Below, one piece after another: positions 8,444-56,486 of a stretch of 64,000 nucleotides of DNA. The notes under the pieces are model-generated. The model made no database searches and was not told the origin of the DNA. It worked only from the letters and a program-made list of their open reading frames with translations. Source of the DNA: Rhodosorus marinus CCMP1338 (Eukaryota > Plantae > Rhodophyta); the NCBI GenBank assembly GCA_029953675.1, contig JAMWBK010000002.1, forward strand, positions 248,001-312,000, given 5' to 3'. Made by a program: the position numbers and the translations under genes. Each line of letters starts with the position of its first letter. Within the stretch, counting starts at the first letter, position 1.

Positions 8444-8696
8444 CTCACCCTAGTCATGGTCAAGGGCTTTTAATCGATATCAAACGAAATGCCCTCCAGT
8501 CTTTGAACCTTCTCCAAATCTCATCCCCTTGCTCTTGATTGCCCAACTCAAACCCTGAAGCTCTGGCTCCAGTGTTTCAGGAATAATCTGTGGACCGACG
8601 GCGAACTGTCCCAAAAAGTCCCAAAAAGTCCCACAGAAAGGTGGGACAATATAGTTGTTATGAAGAGTATGCAGGTGGCTTTTTACCCGAAGTTGT

Positions 8697-9585
8697 CCAG
8701 CGAGCAAGAGGAAACTAAGCGGCTGTTAGTTGTGTGAAGGGATCAATGGAGCGTCTAGTTGGTATGAAAATTTTACAACAACTAGCTCTTCATTCTGTAG
8801 GTACCGGACAAAGCCACCCCTTCTCAATACCCAAAGAGGTCCAACAAGCCAGTCCCAAATCAAGCAACTAGCAGGCCGAGCAAAAGAGGGGCCTAGGCGG
8901 CGGTCAGTTGGGTGAAGCGGGCAATGGAGCGTCTAGATGTTATGGAAAGTTTACAACAACTGGCTTTTCATTCTGCATCGGACAAAGCCACCCCTTCTCA
9001 ATATACGAAGGGGTCCAACAGGCTAGCCCAAAATCAAGGAGGTAGTTTGCCGAGCAAGAGGAGACTGAGAGCAATGAAGCGTCTAGTTGTTATGGAAAGT
9101 TTACAACAACTGGCTTTTCATTCTGTAGGTACCGGACAAAGTCACCCTTCTCAATACCCAAAGAGGTCTAACAAGCTAGCCCTAAATCAGGGAGTGGTTT
9201 GCTGAGCAAGAGGAGACTAAGCGGCTGTCAGTTGGTGAAGCGAGCAATTGAGCGTCTAGTTGCTATGGAAATTTAACAACAACTGGCTTTTCGTTCTGTA
9301 GGTACCGGACTAAGCCACCCGTCTCAATACCCAAAGAGGTCCAACAAACTAGCTCCGAATCAAGCGGCAAGTTTGCCGAGCAAGAGGACTCTGAGCGGTT
9401 GTCAGTTCTGTGAAGCGAGCAATGGAGCGTCTAGTTGTTATGGAAAGTTTACAACGACTGGCTTTTCATTCTGTAGGTACCGGCAAAGCCCCCCACCCCA
9501 AGGAGGTCCAACAAGCTAGCTAATTTTACTGAGCATGAGCAGACTAAGCGGCTGTCAGTTGGTGAAGCGGTCGATTGCCAATGGG
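8697..9585. repeat. Degenerate tandem repeat, ~5.3 units of 152-176 bp
   Basis: Unit anchor (C/T)GAGCAAGAG-like at 8701, 8877, 9051, 9203, 9377, 9530. Shared cores GCGTCTAGTTGTTATGGAAAGTTTACAACAACTGGCTTTTCATTCTGTAGGTACCGG and TCTCAATACCCAAAGAGGTCCAACAAG. Confidence 0.95.
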
Positions 9586-11078: not shown

Positions 11079-11163
11079 GGTGACCCGTTGAGAATCTTCT
11101 CTGGGACAATGTCTCATAGAGGGTGACCGCCTGAGAGTATTCTCTGGGACAATGTCTCATAGA
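11079..11163. repeat. Two-copy ~43-bp tandem duplication
   Basis: 24 identical nt TTCTCTGGGACAATGTCTCATAGA in both copies, with diverged 5' parts (GGTGACC...TGAGA). Confidence 0.85.
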
Positions 11164-11855
11164 CACCAGTTGGACACGAAAGAACGTTTTTTCTATATAA
11201 ATGAATTGGTCTGCGAGCGGGGGATGAATTTTACGCTACGCCCTCATATTTACGTCAAACTGTGAGCCGTGAGTCTATAAAATGTACGTTAAAAAGATTT
11301 TCACACGACAAACGGCTAAATATAACCGTGCTATAACAACTAAATAGAAAAGCATATATCGAAAAACTTCTATCGCAATCTTTTATTAAAAATACATTAA
11401 CAGTTATTCAATTATATAAAATAATTCATGTCTGAATCTTACCACTGATATTGTTGGCATGGTACAACAAAAGAATTGAATAGAAAAATAAATTATTCTT
11501 GAAATAACTGGCAGCGTTTTTATACCCACCCTATAGTATATCACAACAAAAAGAAAAGCTTCGGAAACAAATAAAATATGGTTGTTTATATTTAATATTA
11601 GTATTTTTATCGTTATATTTTGACATGCAGATATTATTTGTATTTATCCGGTCTAAATATTGACTACCTATAGTCTTTTTCTGAGACGTTTTTCTTAACT
11701 TGTCGGGATGGGTTTTGTGGCGAAGCCCCGGGGGGTGGGAAGCAGGTTCGGGGTCAGGTTTAGGGTGGATGCCCGTATCATCAGTCTGTCGCAGTTTTGA
11801 CTAGTTGATAAGAAAATATTTTAATAGTGAGGAACAAAGGACATTGGTAATAAGG

Positions 11856-48304: not shown

Positions 48305-49523
48305 CTAGCCACTTTCAGATGGAACCGGGCTGGACGGTTCAACCACCGGTTTTGATCGTAGATAAACCGCCAGCATTGCAACAAGCGGAGCCAGTGCGAC
48401 AATCGACACTGCTGACGGTACTCTCACGCCAAAGTCTTGGAAGTGCTTTGTGGCAAGAACAAAGCTCAGCGCCGGAGACTGGGTTAGACGTGCACATGCA
48501 GCAGTTTTGTTCAGATCTTCGAATGCTCAATCTCTCAGACTCCAATCGAGCTTCCAGCTGGCTTACCTTGAAAGCAGTCTCAATCGCTAGGGTTCTCGAT
48601 TCCTTTTCTCCCATTGAGAGGCTTTTGGGAAGAAGATATCCGAACAGCCCACCGCACAAATGTAGGATGACGACCGGTGCCAGTAGGAACAGAAAGTAAC
48701 TCTTGAGCGCCGCTGATGTCTTTGCTATCGATACGGTAACGAGGAAACAGGTCGCCAGGATTCCGGCGACGGGGAGCCCTGGTTCGATTCTCCTTGTCGC
48801 TTGAGGAAAAAAGGCGTTAAAGCCGACCCCGAGGAAGATGGGAAATAGAACGACCTGCACTGCCGATTTGGCTACGCCGATGACATCGATGGGGATGATC
48901 TGCCCGATCAGAACCTTTGAGAGCATCGGCAGCATGAAGATCGCTGAAAACGTGGTAAGCGTGGTCATGGCTACCGATAGAGCAGTATCCCCGCCAGCGA
49001 TGTATGTACACAAGTTTGATGCTTGGCCTCCGGATACAATGCCAAGCAGGATCAGGCCGACTTGAAATTCTCTGCTCAGAGTAAAGAGCTTCGTCAAGAT
49101 CAACGCCGTTGCTGGCACAAACATGTAACAGCCGATGAAGCAGATACAAAGCTCTCTCCATTTACTGGATGCGCGGCTCAGATCTGCGAACGATAATGTC
49201 AATCCCATCGAAAGCATCAATGCGCCCAGACCTAGGGTTAAATAGATGTCCTTAACGCCAACAAAAGCCGCTGGAAACACAACACCCAACGCAGAAGAAC
49301 CCAACGACCATAGCGGGAAGAGATTGGTGAACAACTGAAGAGGAGAAGGCCCAGAACTTTTCATAGAAATGCCATCATCCCCACGCGCATCTGCTCGCCT
49401 CAGAACGCTCAACCTCCTCGCCGAGATCGCGAACGCTGCAGACTTGTTCATCGGACTCTTCGCGGTTCCTGACGAGCGCGTCCAAACTCGGTGCGCCGAG
49501 GGCAGAAACAACAAGGACGCCAT
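48305..49523 (-). CDS. Plastid bile acid:sodium symporter (BASS) family metabolite transporter (2 exons)
   Basis: Transit-peptide-like N-terminus, MLSMGLTL, GGQASNLCTY..GDTALSVAMTT, RTLAIETAFK|SPALSFVLATKHF. Substrate cannot be assigned. Confidence 0.9.
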
Positions 49524-50134
49524 AATCGATGACCAAAACGACAACAAGACCAACCTGTCAAAAAACACTCATAAAGCTCGTCGTCCTTTGCCAACTACAG
49601 ATCCAGTTGCGAGCTTGTCTTCCCAGATATCCAAACCGCACGATCTCAAAGAAAACAAAGACTAACCAATAGGTCCAACTGGATTCTCAAGAACGGTTTC
49701 CGACAAAGCATACGCTACTCCCCATTTCCACCCCCAAAAACTCTTCGCAAATGTTAAAAGACGAGACGTCCGAGGGTCCCCCGCGAGTTCCATACTCTGT
49801 GGGCGATACCTACCTTTTGGGTTTCCCCATTAGTTTGCAGACAAGCTACATACACCTCGACAGGCTTTGGCCGTTTGGGTTTAGTTTGAGGCAAAGGGAT
49901 GATCAAAGTTTTCCCATTGGAAAAACTGAGCGCAGGAAAAACAATCATTTTCCATATCTCCCCTCAACTAGTTGCTATCCGTACCTTTTCAGTACCGAAG
50001 CAGCCGGATCAGACAAGTAATAGATAAGTAACCATAGCTTCAATCCTCACCCAGTCACCACAGTCGTCCCGTTCAGGCTCTCTTCACGTGCATTCGCCTT
50101 TTTGGAGCTCAGAGCTTCCGTGAGGGCGGGGGGC

Positions 50135-50333
50135 TGTATTCTTAGAACTTGCCCTGACAGCTGTGTAAGACACTCCCTACTTCAGTGTAAGATCCCTACT
50201 TTAGTGTAAGACGCTAGTGTGCTCGTATCCAACAGTTTCTGCTTTACTGTCAGGTACGTCTTAGTTTACAGTAACCAAGACTATATAAGACCTAGAATTA
50301 AGTAAGGACAAGTTGGTTAGAAGAGTTCCAACA
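50135..50333 (+). promoter_or_regulatory. Full LTR (199 bp, TGT...ACA) with TATA box
   Basis: TATATAA at ~50282, three GTGTAAGA units in U3, PBS-like TGGTCTCATAGC at 50335-50346 (10/12 match to the initiator-Met PBS TGGTATCAGAGC). The last 45 nt recur at 54592-54636. Confidence 0.8.
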
Positions 50334-50422
50334 GTGGTCTCATAGCTCAAAGGTTTAAGAGGATACGAACGGAGGGAGGGGCGATCTAGCGGAAGCAGGA
50401 GGACTCGAGTAGCCAACTTCAA

Positions 50423-51084
50423 ATGACTACGTTTACTATACCCCCGCCCGAGGCTTACGACGGCAAGCGGGATTTCGTCAGGATTCAGACGTTCGTGGCC
50501 TCACTGCGTGGCTACCTGAACTTCCATCACGTAGCAGACTCCGGCCGCCAGTCAGTCCAGTACGCGGGACTGTTTTTGAAGGCCCAGGCCCAGGTCTGGT
50601 ACCAGGGTCTTCGGCAGGCGACGGATGGCATCCCGGAGGCACTGGACTCTCTCGACGATTTCGAACAGGCCCTGCGAGGACAGTTCGAACCTCACGACCA
50701 TATCGAGCGAGCCCGGGCCAAACTGCGTAGCGCTCGACAACGCGGCCCTGATGTCACCCGTTATGTCGACTATCTCGATGAACTTTTCATGCAGTTGGGC
50801 GAGTTCATCAGCGACTCTGAAAAGCTTGAGCGTTTTAAGGCGGGCTTGACTGGTCGTGAGCGAGACTTCGTCTACTATGGTCGACCCAAGACCTATGAAG
50901 AAGCGAAAGCCATCGCATTAAGACTGGCGGGTGCCCACGAGATGCCGAAGGAAGCGACGAAGGGATCCTCGGATCCACCTAGAGCAAACCCCGCACAACG
51001 TCACCGCGTCGACCACACACTCGAAGCATGGGAGCGCCGCCAACCTGCTACCTGTGTCGAGAGATAGGACATATTAAACATGAC
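50423..51084 (+). pseudogene. gag: Retrotransposon gag, frameshifted before a truncated CCHC knuckle
   Basis: PEAYDG...A.VWY...F..ALRGQFEP...F..GL capsid pattern. CYLCREIGHIKHD at 51046-51084 lies in another frame and is cut before its last Cys. Confidence 0.85.
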
Positions 51085-51483
51085 GGTCTCCTCACCGACA
51101 GCCAACCCGTATGTCCGTGGCTCGTCGTACCTCGGTAAGTTGGCGGCTTTCGCAACGTCCTCTCTAATTGCCGTCACCGCACCGGTGTCGATGAGACATT
51201 CCACCGGTTCCGCCTATTGCAGTTAGGCTTGCATTACCCCGTTGCTGTAACCCAACGCTTGGGATGCTGGTCGTTGGACTCTCGGACGGCATCCCAAGCG
51301 TTGGGTTACAGCAACGGGGTAATGCAAGCCTAACTGCATAGGCGTGGTGGCGGCGGAACCGGTGGAATGTCTCATCGACACCGGTGTGGTGACGGCAATT
51401 AGATAGGACGTTGCGAAAGCCGCCAACCTACCGGGGTACGACGAGCCACGGACATACGGGTTGGCTGTCGGTGAGGAGACCGT
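51083..51483. repeat. Long inverted repeat (185-bp and 195-bp arms, 21-nt loop) spanning the protease start
   Basis: 51083-51267 is the reverse complement of 51289-51483, apart from 4 substitutions, a 1-nt indel and an 11-nt indel. Confidence 0.97.
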
Positions 51484-54400
51484 GATCAGCCCCGGAGTGA
51501 CGGAGACACTCCAGGGACGACAATTCATGACGAAGCTGCGAATATTCAAGCATCTAAGGCACGATGTGTACTTAGGTCTCGACTTCTTCAGGCAACATCG
51601 ATTAACTATCGATTGTAGCGCGGAGCCCCCACAGCTGGTACTGGGAGCGGACACCAGCATGCGTGGGATAACAAGTATGGAAACTGAGGAAGAAATAGGG
51701 GAGAGGTCTGGCGCGGTCATCCGGAAAGAGGAAGGCCTAGAGAAAGGCGGAAAGGACCAGGTTGCCGACCCAGGAAAGAGGTTTGGTGCGGTCATCCGGA
51801 AAGAGTTTCCCCAAGTTTTCCAAGATACATTGCCGTTGCCACCGAAGAACCGGCAACGATATGCACTCAAAATCGAATTGGAACCAGGGGCGAGTACACC
51901 AGCTCAACGCGCATATTCGATGTCACGGGTCGACCGAGAGCGGCTACAAGAAGAGCAAGGATTTATCTCACGGAGCAGAGGTCCGTATGCTGCACCTGTG
52001 TTGTACGTGGACAAAAAAGACGGTGGGCGACGCCTCTGCATCGACTATCGCCGGTTGAACCAGATCACCGTGCGAGAAAGAACGACCCCGCCTAGAGTGG
52101 AGGAGCTATTGGATACCCTGAGCAGCGCTCGGGTTTTCACAACGTTAGACCTTCGCTCGGGATATTGGCAGTTGCCAATTGAACAGGCATCACGCGAGAA
52201 GACGGCCTTTGTCACGTGCTTCGGACAATACCAATGGAATGTCATGCCGTTTGGGTTGAAGAATGCGCCCTCGGCATTCATCCGCTACTTGACGGACGTA
52301 TCGTATGATCTTCTCAACCAGTGCGTGGTGTTATACGTTGGCAACATTCTGGTATATTCCCCCGATGACATACAACACCAGGACGATGTTCGAAAGGTGC
52401 TACGACGCCTCGAGCAGCATCAGTTGATCGTCAAATACTCGAAGTGCGGTTTTGGACTACGCCAAGTTTGCTACCTAGGCCAAATCTTGGCGGGGGGCAC
52501 TCGACGTCCCGATCCGGAGAAGGTCAAAGCAATTCAGAAGTGGAGGACGCCAACGACGGTTAAGGAGCTACGGGCCTTCATGGGTTTCGCGAACTTCTTG
52601 CGCCCCTTTGTACCACACTTCGCCCAAGTGGCGGCGCCCCTCCACAGGCTAACGAAGAAGGACCAGAAGTGGGGTTGGCACACGGACGAACAACAAGCCT
52701 TTGATGGGTTAAAATCCGCCATATAAGCAACCACCATGCTGTACATGGTTGATCCGATCCTCCCCTTCATCGCAGACGGGCGCGAGCGACACCGGGGTGG
52801 GTGCAATCCTATTCCAGACCCGCCAGGATCAGGAGGTGCCCGTGGCGTATATGTCCCGATCGTTCAATAGTACCGAGAAACGCTACAGTACGTACGAGAA
52901 AGAACTCTACGCCATCGTCCTGGCCATCCGAGGTGGTCCGTGTATCTTGATGGGCAACAGTTCACTGTGCGTACGGACCATAACCCGCTACGCTTCCTGC
53001 AAACACAGACGACATTAACTCGTCAGCAGGCGCGGTACGTGAATATATTACTACCCAACTCCTTTGAGGTTCAATACGAACGCGGCAAGATAAACGTCGC
53101 GGATGCACTGAGTCGCGACGCACTACGAACCACCCGCGTCACGATGGAAGCCGATTGGACTCCCCCGAATACCAAGCCGATCCAGAATTCTGCACGCAAT
53201 TTCGAAGCCCGGACCAGTTTGAGGGTTTCCAACGAAAAAAGGGTCTATTATTCCTCCATGCACGACTTTGCGTACCCGAACGCCGTGTTAATCAGGTCAT
53301 CGATGGGCACCACCAGTCTCTAACGGCAGGCCATTTCGGCGTACAAGCTACTTACCGTGTGGTGCGACGACGCTATTACTGGCCTACCATGAGGAAAAAC
53401 TTTTTTTTTTTTGCACGCGCGTACAACAATGCGAGATATGCCCGTGAACAACCACTTCGGCGCAACCAGGGCGAGCTGCAACCGCTCGCAATTCCGAGGA
53501 ATCGCGCGGTCGACTGGACTATGGACTTCATAACAGGCTTTCCCAGTATCGCGGGTAATGACGCTATACTAGTTGTGGTCGATCGGCTCACGAAGTACGC
53601 CGTATTTATCCCGACGGCGAAAATGGTAACCGCGGAAGGAGTGGCAACACTTATCCTGCAACATATCGTCGCCTGGTTCGGATTGCCACAGAGTTTTGTC
53701 ACAGATCGCGATCCAGTCTTCACGGCAACTTTTTGGAGCCACCTAATGCAATTACTGGGCATTCAACAACTATTGTCCACGGCATACCATCCTGAAACGG
53801 ACGGTCAGACGGAGCGCGTGAATCAGACACTTCAAATCATGCTGAGATGCTGCTGTACAAATCGCACGTGGGTGCAGAGCCTCCCGCTACTTCAGCTGGC
53901 GTATAGCAATCATCCCTCAGCCAGCACGGGGTATTCACCATATTTCCTGTTAACAGGGGGGGCATCCGCGGCTCCACTTGGATGTCTCACTACCTACCAC
54001 GCAAATTGAGAACCTCCCCGATGCCGCTACTGCATTCTCCCAACGACAACAGCGAATTCTTGCAGATGCACGCAAATCACTGACCCTGGCACAAGAAATA
54101 TCTACGGCATCCGCTAATACCCACCGTCATGCGAAGGTGTTCCACGTCGGCGATTACGTTTATTTGTCAACGAAGAATCTCTCACTGGAGGGCCCAACCC
54201 GCTTCCAACCTCGATGGTTGGGCCCGTTTCCCGTGATCGAGAAACACTCTGACGTGGCATACACTCTGCAGTTACCGGATGAGATGCGCATACATTCGAC
54301 ATTTCACGTTTCCTTGCTAAAAGGTGCCCCTACGTGTCCTCCGAATTCTCCGATGCGGAGTATCCCTCTCCAATCGGATCTCTATTCAACGCTACCGATC

Positions 54401-54592
54401 CTGTCGGTGTTGGGGGTCCGCCATGCGGCTAACGGGATCCGACAGTTCCTATGTTATCGCGAAAAGGAATCCTGGACTGATGCGACTTGGATACCCGAGC
54501 CGGACTACCCGACCGATCTACAATCTCGACGACGCTTACGACACTACCTCAATTATCGCAAGGCGCTTGACGCGCTACCTTCAACTTCTTGA
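51289..54592 (+). pseudogene. pol: Retrotransposon pol (PR-RT-RH-IN-chromo), inactivated
   Basis: PR LIDTGV with an in-frame TAG, and VYLGLDFF. RT RLCIDYR, LDLRSGYWQ, MPFGLKNAP and YVGNILVYS (catalytic YVDD lost). RH GASDTGVG, YSTYEKEL. IN MDFITGFP, TDRD, HPETDGQTER. Chromo-like DATWIPE. Confidence 0.95.
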
Positions 54593-54636
54593 GACCTAGA
54601 ATTAAGTAAAGACAAGTTGGTTAGAAGAGTTCCAAC
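54592..54636 (+). repeat. 45-bp 3' LTR remnant
   Basis: AGACCTAGAATTAAGTAAAGACAAGTTGGTTAGAAGAGTTCCAAC matches 50288-50332 with one mismatch and abuts the pol stop codon. Confidence 0.95.
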
Positions 54637-55298
54637 CTGTACCATACCTAAACGACAGCTGTGAAGCGCAAATTGAGGATTCGCTTGAGACCTAGTTAGT
54701 CCAGTAAAGTCTCTTAAAAATTACGGTAGAGGTACATTGATCTGACTTGAGGGGTACACAAGGGGTTGATCCAATAGTAGGCGACTAGTAATCAATCAGT
54801 GACCACCAGATCCCACCATTTTTACTCCTCTCAAAGTGCTCACCCGACACACTCCTTTCGCGCTCTTGAACAATCTCTAGTCCACATTCTGTGTCAGCAT
54901 ATTCTACGACGGATAGTGACTTAGTCTTTCTATTTTGCCCATATTTCACCTGACCAGCCGTTGAGGGGTGTTCTAGCTGATTCTTGGCCTATATACAGTC
55001 TAGATTAGGGACATATCATTTTTTAGGACCGCTGGTTGTGTTCGTGAGATGGTTTTAGAGGAGAATGTATCTCGTTGCGGGGTTGTACTCTAGTATAGCA
55101 AATCTCATGATTCAGATAAATTGGGTAAAACCGGGGAGAAACACTCAAGACCGTCAGCTGAACGTTTCTGTCGGAATGAGGTCCAGCGAGACTGCCTGGT
55201 CGTTGGTCGATTCGAGTTCTGATCTCCTCCGTTTGAAGTGTGCCGCGCCGTCGGTGACAACCCACAACAGTCTCCAAAAATGTAATCTTTCATAGACT

Positions 55299-56486
55299 TT
55301 ACACGGCGCCTTGATCAATAAGTCGGGCAAGCTCAGTAGCGAAACGATGCATAGGAAAGCCCATGACGTTGAAGTAGCATCCCTCAACACCCTAGTTTTT
55401 CCGCAAATCCATGAGGAGGAGAGAGGATCTTTATTGATCACCCTGTATGCGCTAAGATTATCTCTGTCATATATGGAACAGGTGCTTACCTTAACAAGCG
55501 AGCCACCAATGCCTTGAATACCATATGCACCTGCTTTATCCATTGGTTCCCTCGTCCGAATATACCTGCACAGGTTGATCGATACAATTCCGATTGAGGG
55601 TTTTGACCAGCACTGATGCAAATCGAGTGAGATAGATCGAACGAAAATGCTTACTCCCAAATCAGGTTGTCATTCAACTCCGCGAAGCTGACACTATCAT
55701 TGTCATCCGCGAGCGAAAAACATCAGCGTCAGCGAGGGCTCAGTGGAAAACTTGCTCAGTTCGCTGTACTTACTTGGTCGCTTCATAGAATGAAGCTGTG
55801 CACGTTCTCGCGTCCTTGAGAAACAACGCCACGCTCGTCAAGACTGTGTGGTTCCTGTTGCTGTCGCTCAAAAGTGGGATCGCACTGATTATCAGTTCGT
55901 GGTCCGCGGGTTGGCTAAACTGCTGATCATTCTATACCTGAGCGACTTCAGCATGCTGAAAGCCTCGGCCTCGGATAGTGGCTTTTCCAGGATCTTGTTG
56001 TCAAGTATGACCTAAACCACGATGTAAAAACATGCAAATCACCGCGTAGCGGTAAGAACGATCCTAGACGGGTTGTTGCGGTCTTCTTTTTGAACAAACA
56101 GCTTACCACAGTGTCCGATCCAATCACAAGATCTGGAGGTGCATCTGATCCGATGAACCTCTTCGCGACTTCTTCAGCTTTACATCTGGCGTTCTCGAGT
56201 ACATATTCACTCGGATGGGAGAAGGTGGACTTGTCAAGATTCTCCTCGAAGCCTGATACAACGACTTCATGCTTGAGTCCTTTTCAGAGATTAGAAGTTG
56301 AGTTTCGTATCAGTCATCCCACGGTCGTCGTTGTCGTCGTCGTCCTAAAGGCAAGACGCATCGATCCAGATCGAAACAGGAAAATGAAAACCAACCTAGC
56401 AGATCCAGAATCTCACGTCGTCTTGGACTTTGGCTTGCCAGAACGATCCTCTTGGAGGATAGATATGGCAGATGTTGCACGATCAT
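55299..56486 (-). CDS. Maf-family nucleoside-triphosphate pyrophosphatase (YhdE/ASMTL-Maf type), multi-exon
   Basis: Spliced reading: RIVLASQSPRRREIL, LVIGSDTV, ILEKP, NHTVLTSV, EPMDKAGAYGIQG, YFNVMGFPM. Confidence 0.92.

Follow-up and report, generated by a model that had tools for sequence, protein, structure and literature searches.

The Mu killer locus of maize is said to have been reported by Slotkin, Freeling and Lisch in 2005. It is a partly deleted copy of a DNA transposon that carries an inverted duplication of itself and is transcribed from a flanking promoter, and its small interfering RNAs (siRNAs) and heritable silencing in trans have been demonstrated (as cited in PMC9868043). 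Here, we describe a comparable arrangement in a red alga. The 64,000-nt stretch that we analyzed ("the window") is nuclear DNA of Rhodosorus marinus CCMP1338 (GCA_029953675.1, JAMWBK010000002.1; contig position = window position + 248,000), and it contains a degenerate copy of a Ty3/gypsy (Metaviridae) long terminal repeat (LTR) retrotransposon. The ORF at 19256-21223 matches an annotated protein of this contig exactly. As in Mu killer, the copy is partly deleted and includes an inverted duplication of some of its own sequence (the fold-back), so that read-through transcription would produce a long RNA hairpin with homology to the active members of the family. Unlike Mu killer, the Rhodosorus locus belongs to an LTR retrotransposon, its presumed promoter is the element's own LTR, and it is known from sequence alone.

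Rearranged endogenous pararetrovirus loci of plants are a second close comparison. They too come from reverse-transcribing elements, their degenerate copies have micro-scale inversions, and they have been proposed to confer heritable immunity through hairpin RNA (PMC9868043). However, those loci have matching siRNA peaks, their hosts have well-characterized RNA interference (RNAi), and they are viral integrations without LTR-driven transcription (PMC9868043). As for how such structures might form, it is documented that a change of template in the course of reverse transcription can yield complex LTR elements, which then integrate normally (PMC1950507). The rearranged daughter element arises before integration and has a normal target-site duplication, as does the second Rhodosorus copy that we discuss below (PMC1950507). 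The complex elements described there are fusions of two parents in direct orientation, whereas the Rhodosorus copies have internal inverted duplications (PMC1950507).

The fold-back also resembles a quasi-palindrome mutation, in which an excursion to the opposite strand on a short inverted repeat inserts the reverse complement of a neighboring sequence, so that a weak palindrome becomes long and perfect. Ripley's model is said to account for such template-switch mutations in DNA replication. Short template-switch events have been described in human and bacterial genomes and usually involve tens of bases. In contrast, the excursion in Rhodosorus is about 200 nt and was probably made with reverse transcriptase. 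The fold-back is best read as a template-switch product in its mechanism and, in its function, as a candidate source of hairpin RNA. We think it most likely that the hairpin is a replication accident rather than a device.

An inverted duplication at the gag-protease boundary

The fold-back in the window is a genuine and fairly old internal inverted duplication. By a repeat search and blastn, its arms lie at 51080/51086-51267 and 51289-51481/51486 and are inverted relative to each other. The first-pass annotation of this DNA had reported an inverted copy with a 21-nt loop and long perfect stems, and this is what we find: the loop-proximal stem pairs perfectly over 50 bp (51218-51267 with 51289-51338) and the outer one over 47-49 bp. 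When the arms were aligned globally, 4 of the 181 aligned positions were substituted (2.2%), and there were also indels of 1 nt and 11 nt. RNA of 51040-51530 is predicted to fold at -423 kcal/mol, as compared to -180 +/- 7 for shuffled sequences (z = -34; 0 of 100 shuffles were as good). Besides these arms, there are no inverted repeats of at least 40 nt in the 64-kb window.

The ancestral order can be read from L002, a 1603-nt transcript contig from JGI sample 3300016967 (a Rhodosorus transcriptome, from CCMP1338 or possibly another strain). We located L002 by a gag search (its gag is 92% identical), and its zinc knuckle, gag end, and protease start are all intact. Relative to L002, about 90 nt of the end of gag are missing, and in their place are the following ~227 nt, copied in inverted orientation (see Table 1 for the matching segments). 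Lost in this way were the last Cys of the knuckle, the C-terminus of gag, the region of the gag stop, and a putative frameshift site. Alignments to L002 and to L013, a second copy of the family from the same genome, agree with the earlier statement that the inversion starts within the zinc knuckle, ahead of its last Cys.

Both junctions have microhomology. Junction 1 is at 51085/51086, with a 2-nt microhomology (AC) at 51084-51085, and junction 2 is the 7-nt palindrome GGGATGC/GCATCCC. The ancestral sequence at this second point reads GGGATGC, 21 nt, GCATCCC, and the 21-nt spacer corresponds to L002 855-875. The 7-bp palindrome and its spacer are kept in L002, L013, L003, and the more distant L017 (L003 and L017 are transcripts of sister families, from the same JGI sample). 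Rather than being neutral filler, the loop consists of these ancestral 21 nt, turned into the inverted orientation. So, the locus has the hallmarks of a quasi-palindrome template switch, as adjacent sequence is inverted, an interval is replaced, and there is microhomology at both switch points. In a hairpin transcript, the junctions would read ATTAAACATGAC joined to GGTCTCCTCACC and CTCGGACGGCATCCC joined to AAGCGTTGG.

The two arms have decayed separately. When we polarized their differences with L002, L003, and L013, the derived state was in the inverted arm for one substitution and for an 11-nt deletion (which GGCG flanks) and in the sense arm for three substitutions and a 1-nt deletion. 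The substitutions in the sense arm change Ala to Val in the DTGA motif, Glu to a TAG stop (51404-51406), and Arg to Gly; the DTGA and IRED of the inverted arm are also present in three relatives. The polarized alignment thus upholds the earlier observation that the inverted arm has DTGA and IRED while the sense arm has DTGV and a stop, and with it the view that the arms diverged after the event. Because each arm bears its own derived changes, both must have decayed since then, and a chimera of one molecule is disfavored.

A different fold-back is present in L013 (JAMWBK010000004.1:1,654,385-1,675,495), which we reached through KAJ8905771.1, a protein in the 90% cluster of the gag match. The element occupies 9693-11744 of L013 (JAMWBK010000004.1:1,664,077-1,666,128; 2.05 kb) and has two 219-bp TG..CA LTRs that are 98% identical, a perfect 5-bp target-site duplication (TGAAC), a primer-binding site, a polypurine tract (GGGAGGAA), an intact gag, and a protease in the -1 frame. 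Its fold-back is in another location within the element than that of the window copy. The arms (11101-11280 and 11312-11491) are 180 nt long with 3 mismatches, are separated by a 31-nt spacer, and are predicted to fold at -424 kcal/mol. The spacer is downstream sequence in inverted orientation, entered by a 3-nt overlap (TTT), and an 8-nt overlap (CGCGCTAC) connects the inverted arm to the final 46 nt ahead of the 3' LTR, with about 3.3 kb deleted. In the roughly 91 kb of this genome that we read, the only long inverted repeats (at least 40 nt) are the fold-backs of the window and of L013, which belong to the same family. This second hairpin copy, and the fact that the window fold-back turns on the gag-pol palindrome of the family itself, make the locus more interesting than an ordinary rearranged repeat.

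Origin of the fold-back

On balance, we lean towards microhomology-guided template switching during reverse transcription, before integration, as the origin of the fold-back. A growing strand of sense polarity would have halted within the zinc knuckle of gag and moved, via the AC microhomology, to a template of the same polarity about 400 nt further on. There it would have been extended backwards, across the start of the protease and then the 21-nt spacer, before returning to its proper template through the 7-nt palindrome just past the gag stop. The outcome would be that about 90 nt were exchanged for about 200 nt of antisense sequence. (A mirror-image variant, on a second minus strand, would fit equally well.)

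Four observations favor such an origin. In both copies, the divergence of the arms is close to the divergence of the LTRs (2.2% for the window arms, with a difference at 1 of 45 positions in the 45-bp core of the LTR remnant, and 1.7% for the arms versus 2.3% for the LTRs in L013), which favors an event before integration. Also, both of the two copies examined have independent fold-backs, L013 keeps every cis element for integration, and the window fold-back turns at a conserved structured site; each of these favors reverse transcription. On the other side, a second template is required, such as another cDNA or else RNA that was left over or co-packaged, since the inverted loop excludes self-priming. 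The window copy has also suffered a post-integration 3' deletion of its polypurine tract and unique 3' region (U3), so DNA-level rearrangements at microhomology did occur at this locus. Finally, the LTR comparison for the window copy rests on 45 bp only, and the number of genomic copies examined is two. These points weigh against our preferred origin. Simpler ways of making a hairpin were rejected: if the minus strand had snapped back and primed itself, or if a broken end had been repaired by a simple fold-back, the loop would be in the sense orientation, but it is inverted in both copies.

It is possible, although we do not think it likely, that the fold-back formed on the chromosome long after insertion, either by template switching at a replication fork (of the quasi-palindrome type, or by fork stalling and template switching or microhomology-mediated break-induced replication, FoSTeS/MMBIR) or by the repair of a break. 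An excursion from the leading to the lagging template would give exactly what is seen here, two switches at microhomologies of 2 nt and 7 nt and a spacer that is inverted, and the same copy bears a deletion, ending on a TCTTGAG repeat, that definitely occurred after integration. However, a late event would not be expected to leave arms that are about as diverged as the LTRs, let alone in both copies. Nor would it be expected to strike both of the copies examined, which are of one family, and to leave about 85 kb of other DNA without any such event. The far junction of L013 is 46 nt before the 3' LTR, so that the polypurine tract was spared and all of the cis elements for integration were kept; and if the event was a simple break fold-back, then the loop should be in the sense orientation, which is not what is observed. 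An artifact of assembly or sequencing, from a chimeric nanopore read or a polishing error, is highly improbable. The genome was assembled with NextDenovo from Oxford Nanopore (ONT) reads alone and polished three times by Pilon with 100-bp Illumina reads (PMC10250338), so residual errors in repeats are possible and may explain some of the differences between the arms. But the contig is 3.48 Mb long, and the fold-back is about 299 kb into it, with colinear sequence of the element on both sides. The differences between the arms can be polarized, with derived changes in each, and the junctions use microhomology at a conserved palindrome. Furthermore, the second, different fold-back is on another contig, within an element that has a perfect target-site duplication, and nanopore chimeras of template followed by complement fuse whole reads rather than making local insertions of 190 nt.

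A template-switch accident fully explains the structure, without the need for a function. Even as accidents, the two fold-backs are a concrete case of errors in reverse transcription that make long perfect hairpins, which are thought to be raw material for hairpin-RNA and microRNA-like loci.

A possible source of hairpin RNA

Whether the fold-back acts as a silencer is a question of function, and the answer is compatible with any origin. The first-pass annotation had suggested a counterpart of Mu killer, a natural hairpin-RNA silencer of the family. On this reading, a transcript driven by the LTR would be cut by Dicer within its ~190-bp stem, and the resulting small RNAs would silence intact family members in trans. 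The anatomy behind this suggestion holds up, as a dead Ty3/gypsy copy contains a fold-back that follows a 5' LTR with a TATA box, but searches for a junction transcript and for an Argonaute (AGO) from Rhodosorus came back empty, and the term 'allele' that was used for the locus is unsupported. We consider a functional silencer unlikely.

The window copy cannot produce Gag-Pol. Should its 5' LTR still be active, then the RNA made from it would fold into ~190 bp of near-perfect double-stranded RNA, and this hairpin is a possible Dicer substrate against the family. The 5' LTR does keep TATATAA and the position at which three related transcripts (L002, L003, and L017) start, the predicted hairpin is very stable, and a family member with an intact gag (L002) is expressed in the Rhodosorus transcriptome. 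Of the 162 21-mers of the antisense arm, 50 (31%) are perfectly complementary to L002 and 75 match L013, but none of the hairpin 21-mers match the sister families L003 and L017. L013 is a second, independent copy in the same genome, with a hairpin that its LTR would drive. Comparable rearranged hairpin loci yield siRNAs in plants (PMC9868043). Argonaute and Dicer-like genes have been reported in mesophilic red algae, with RNAi genes in some of them, such as Chondrus and Asparagopsis (PMC12026948), and our protein searches found AGO in Gracilariopsis and Gracilaria. In contrast, RNAi genes were lost in one class of red algae, the Cyanidiophyceae (PMC9812998).

We found no transcript across the fold-back junction in the JGI collection. 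When we scanned its metagenomes and transcriptomes for a junction-specific 19-mer (CTCTCGGACGGCATCCCAA), there were nine matches, and all of them were chance matches in contigs that are unrelated to the element. The transcripts L002, L003, L017, and L019 (a transcript of a non-autonomous relative, from the same sample) do not contain inverted repeats of at least 25 nt, so there is no sign that a hairpin copy was expressed in that sample. Similarly, a query with the PIWI domain of Asparagopsis AGO3 and an exhaustive search with a Gracilariopsis AGO matched AGOs of Florideophyceae, but none that could be assigned to Rhodosorus (we checked the names of the best 18 matches and the samples of four candidates, and none was Rhodosorus or 3300016967). 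A literature search for Rhodosorus with Argonaute found nothing. The promoter function is also putative: the window LTR has several indels, and a deletion makes its spacing from TATA to start differ by 23 nt from that of the L013 and L019 LTRs. The 3' LTR is gone, and the decay of the arms looks neutral.

A broader idea is that this Ty3/gypsy family repeatedly spawns LTR-driven hairpins, seeded by the palindrome of its own frameshift signal, and that the host keeps them as heritable triggers of RNAi. We view this as quite improbable. Still, should both hairpins be transcribed and processed by Dicer, red algae other than seaweeds would have their first described case of natural RNAi triggers derived from a transposon, with a defined target family and a simple test by presence or absence between strains. 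A true silencer would be the equivalent, in a red alga, of Mu killer and pararetroviral hairpin immunity. To our knowledge, the silencing of transposons by small RNAs is essentially uncharacterized in the red-algal lineage.

The host element and its surroundings

The features of the window copy are collected in Table 1. It has the gene order gag (CCHC), protease (DTG), reverse transcriptase (YxDD), RNase H, and integrase (DDE), and all of these genes are defective here. Matches to gag, reverse transcriptase, and integrase bear out its earlier assignment to a Gypsy family.

Table 1. Features of the retrotransposon copy and its fold-back, in window coordinates (ORF, open reading frame)
Feature	Position	Strand or orientation	Comment
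Candidate 5' target-site duplication, TGTAT	50135-50139	+	Tentative; 3' partner TGTAC at 54638-54642, 4/5 match
5' LTR, 194 bp	50140-50333	+	blastn to both L013 LTRs and global alignment
Match to L002 1-752	50321-51071	sense	
Primer-binding site, TGGTCTCATAGC	50335-50346	+	Directly after LTR end; conserved in L002, L003, L013, L017
gag ORF, Ty3 capsid type	50423-51067	+	ORF list
Truncated CCHC zinc knuckle, C-X2-C-X4-H-X4	51047-51085	+	Stops one codon before last Cys
Match to L002 848-1074	51295-51080	inverted	
Inverted arm	51086-51267	-	Antisense copy of protease start; ancestral DTGA and IRED kept
Loop	51268-51288	-	21 nt; reverse complement of ancestral 21 nt
Sense arm	51289-51481	+	Original protease start
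Match to L002 876 onward	51289 onward	sense, colinear	
Remaining protease, linker, and reverse transcriptase ORF	51461-52726	+	ORF list; PF00078-family matches
RNase H, integrase, and C-terminal region	52749-54592	+	Four overlapping ORFs in different frames
3' LTR remnant, last ~48 bp	54590-54637	+	blastn, L013 and L019 comparison

The gag ORF is 94% identical to P0121, a Ty3-capsid/CCHC protein, and the assembly does not include an annotated gene for it. Alignment to L002 shows a 1-nt deletion between 50982 and 50983 that shifts the zinc knuckle out of the gag frame; the intact knuckle of the relatives is CYQCQEVGHYKRDC or CYKCQEVGHFKRDC. The gag of L013 (10001-11111) is annotated as KAJ8905771.1 ('hypothetical protein NDN08_002276'), which should be read as a retrotransposon gag protein. 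(The gene model is not colinear in translation and is presumably spliced into the protease region.) The best match of the reverse transcriptase ORF is P0001, a Rhodosorus transcript (60%), and its matches carry PF00078, PF17919, and PF17917, with domains of reverse transcriptase and RNase H. The enzyme is dead, as had been claimed: its catalytic site is YVGN (52334-52345), where relatives have YIDD or YVDD. The linker between protease and reverse transcriptase contains a 34-nt direct repeat (51697-51730 and 51772-51805, 88% identical, 75 nt apart) that encodes GAVIRKE twice, and the L013 fold-back turns within that repeat region. The integrase core matches models of DDE transposases. The C-terminal ORF (53978-54592) is chromodomain-like by eye only and had no match in an NCBIfam search, and by eye the element looks to be of the chromovirus-type branch.

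The TATA box that had been noticed in the upstream LTR is present (TATATAA at 50282-50288, about 800 nt before the hairpin), with a putative transcript start at about 50321. Relative to the 219-bp LTR of L013, the window 5' LTR has four or five indels, including the 23-nt deletion, which lies between the TATA box and the end of the LTR. The candidate target-site duplication was placed by aligning the window LTR with the L013 LTR (TG..CA ends, perfect TGAAC). At the other end of the element, a deletion removed the polypurine tract together with the initial ~170 bp of the 3' LTR. It ends on TCTTGAG, a sequence that L013 has both at the end of pol and within the LTR; in L019, the order is intact (pol end, GGGAGGAA, LTR). 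Because the window 5' LTR retains U3, this deletion must have occurred after integration. The pol ORF now ends on a TGA that was made at the deletion junction (deletion region 54573-54637). We had also considered an LTR of 47 bp, from an initial 45-bp end repeat, and an RNA-like retrocopy with a terminal repeat (R) at each end (R...R). Both were rejected because L013 and L019 have a 219-bp LTR and the intact order of pol end, polypurine tract, and LTR.

The primer-binding site of the relatives is TGGTCTCATCGC, and the 64-kb window contains no tRNA gene with which it could be compared. Three of the related transcripts begin 13-16 nt before TGGTCTCATCGC (L002 1-26, L003 1-28, and L017 1-28; the window equivalent is 50320-50346). 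This common start implies either an unusually short segment of terminal repeat and unique 5' region (R-U5, about 12-14 nt) or a systematic break in assembly at the terminal repeat.

At the gag-pol boundary, there is a candidate -1 frameshift signal (L013 10720-10778, L003 823-881, and L017 953-1011); in the window, its 5' half was deleted and a remnant is left at 51261-51295. Its parts are the heptamer GGAAAAC, the gag stop, and a 12-bp stem (GGACTCCGGACG/CGTCCGAGAGTCC), and the GGGATGC in the loop of the stem can pair with the downstream GCATCCC, to give a candidate pseudoknot. In L003, L013, and L017, pol is in the -1 frame. The candidate signal is far better conserved than the flanking gag, and 96% of cells in the pseudoknot pair, but there are 0 compensatory changes among the four sequences, so this is conservation only.

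The non-autonomous relative, L019, has (in 1-2128) a zinc knuckle, a long run of repeated units similar to GAVIRKE, the end of pol, the polypurine tract, and a complete LTR. It extends about 1 kb past the LTR into a flank that holds a 177-aa ORF, and it is either a read-through of the LTR or a chimeric mRNA that contains an LTR.

The element is flanked by a divergent gene for a BASS-family transporter (48339-49568, - strand), whose ATG is at about 49523. The fold-back had been placed ~600 bp from this start codon, but that distance applies to the 5' end of the element (LTR start at 50140, 617 nt away), and the hairpin is about 1.56 kb away. On the other flank, a Maf-like ORF (55154-55660, - strand) points into the 3' end of the element, and read-through from it would yield antisense transcripts of the element. 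Elsewhere in the window, a ~174-nt unit is repeated in tandem about five times (8696-9577; 62-89% identical) and, separate from it, there is a 43-nt tandem duplication (11079-11163). Both of these are unrelated to the element.

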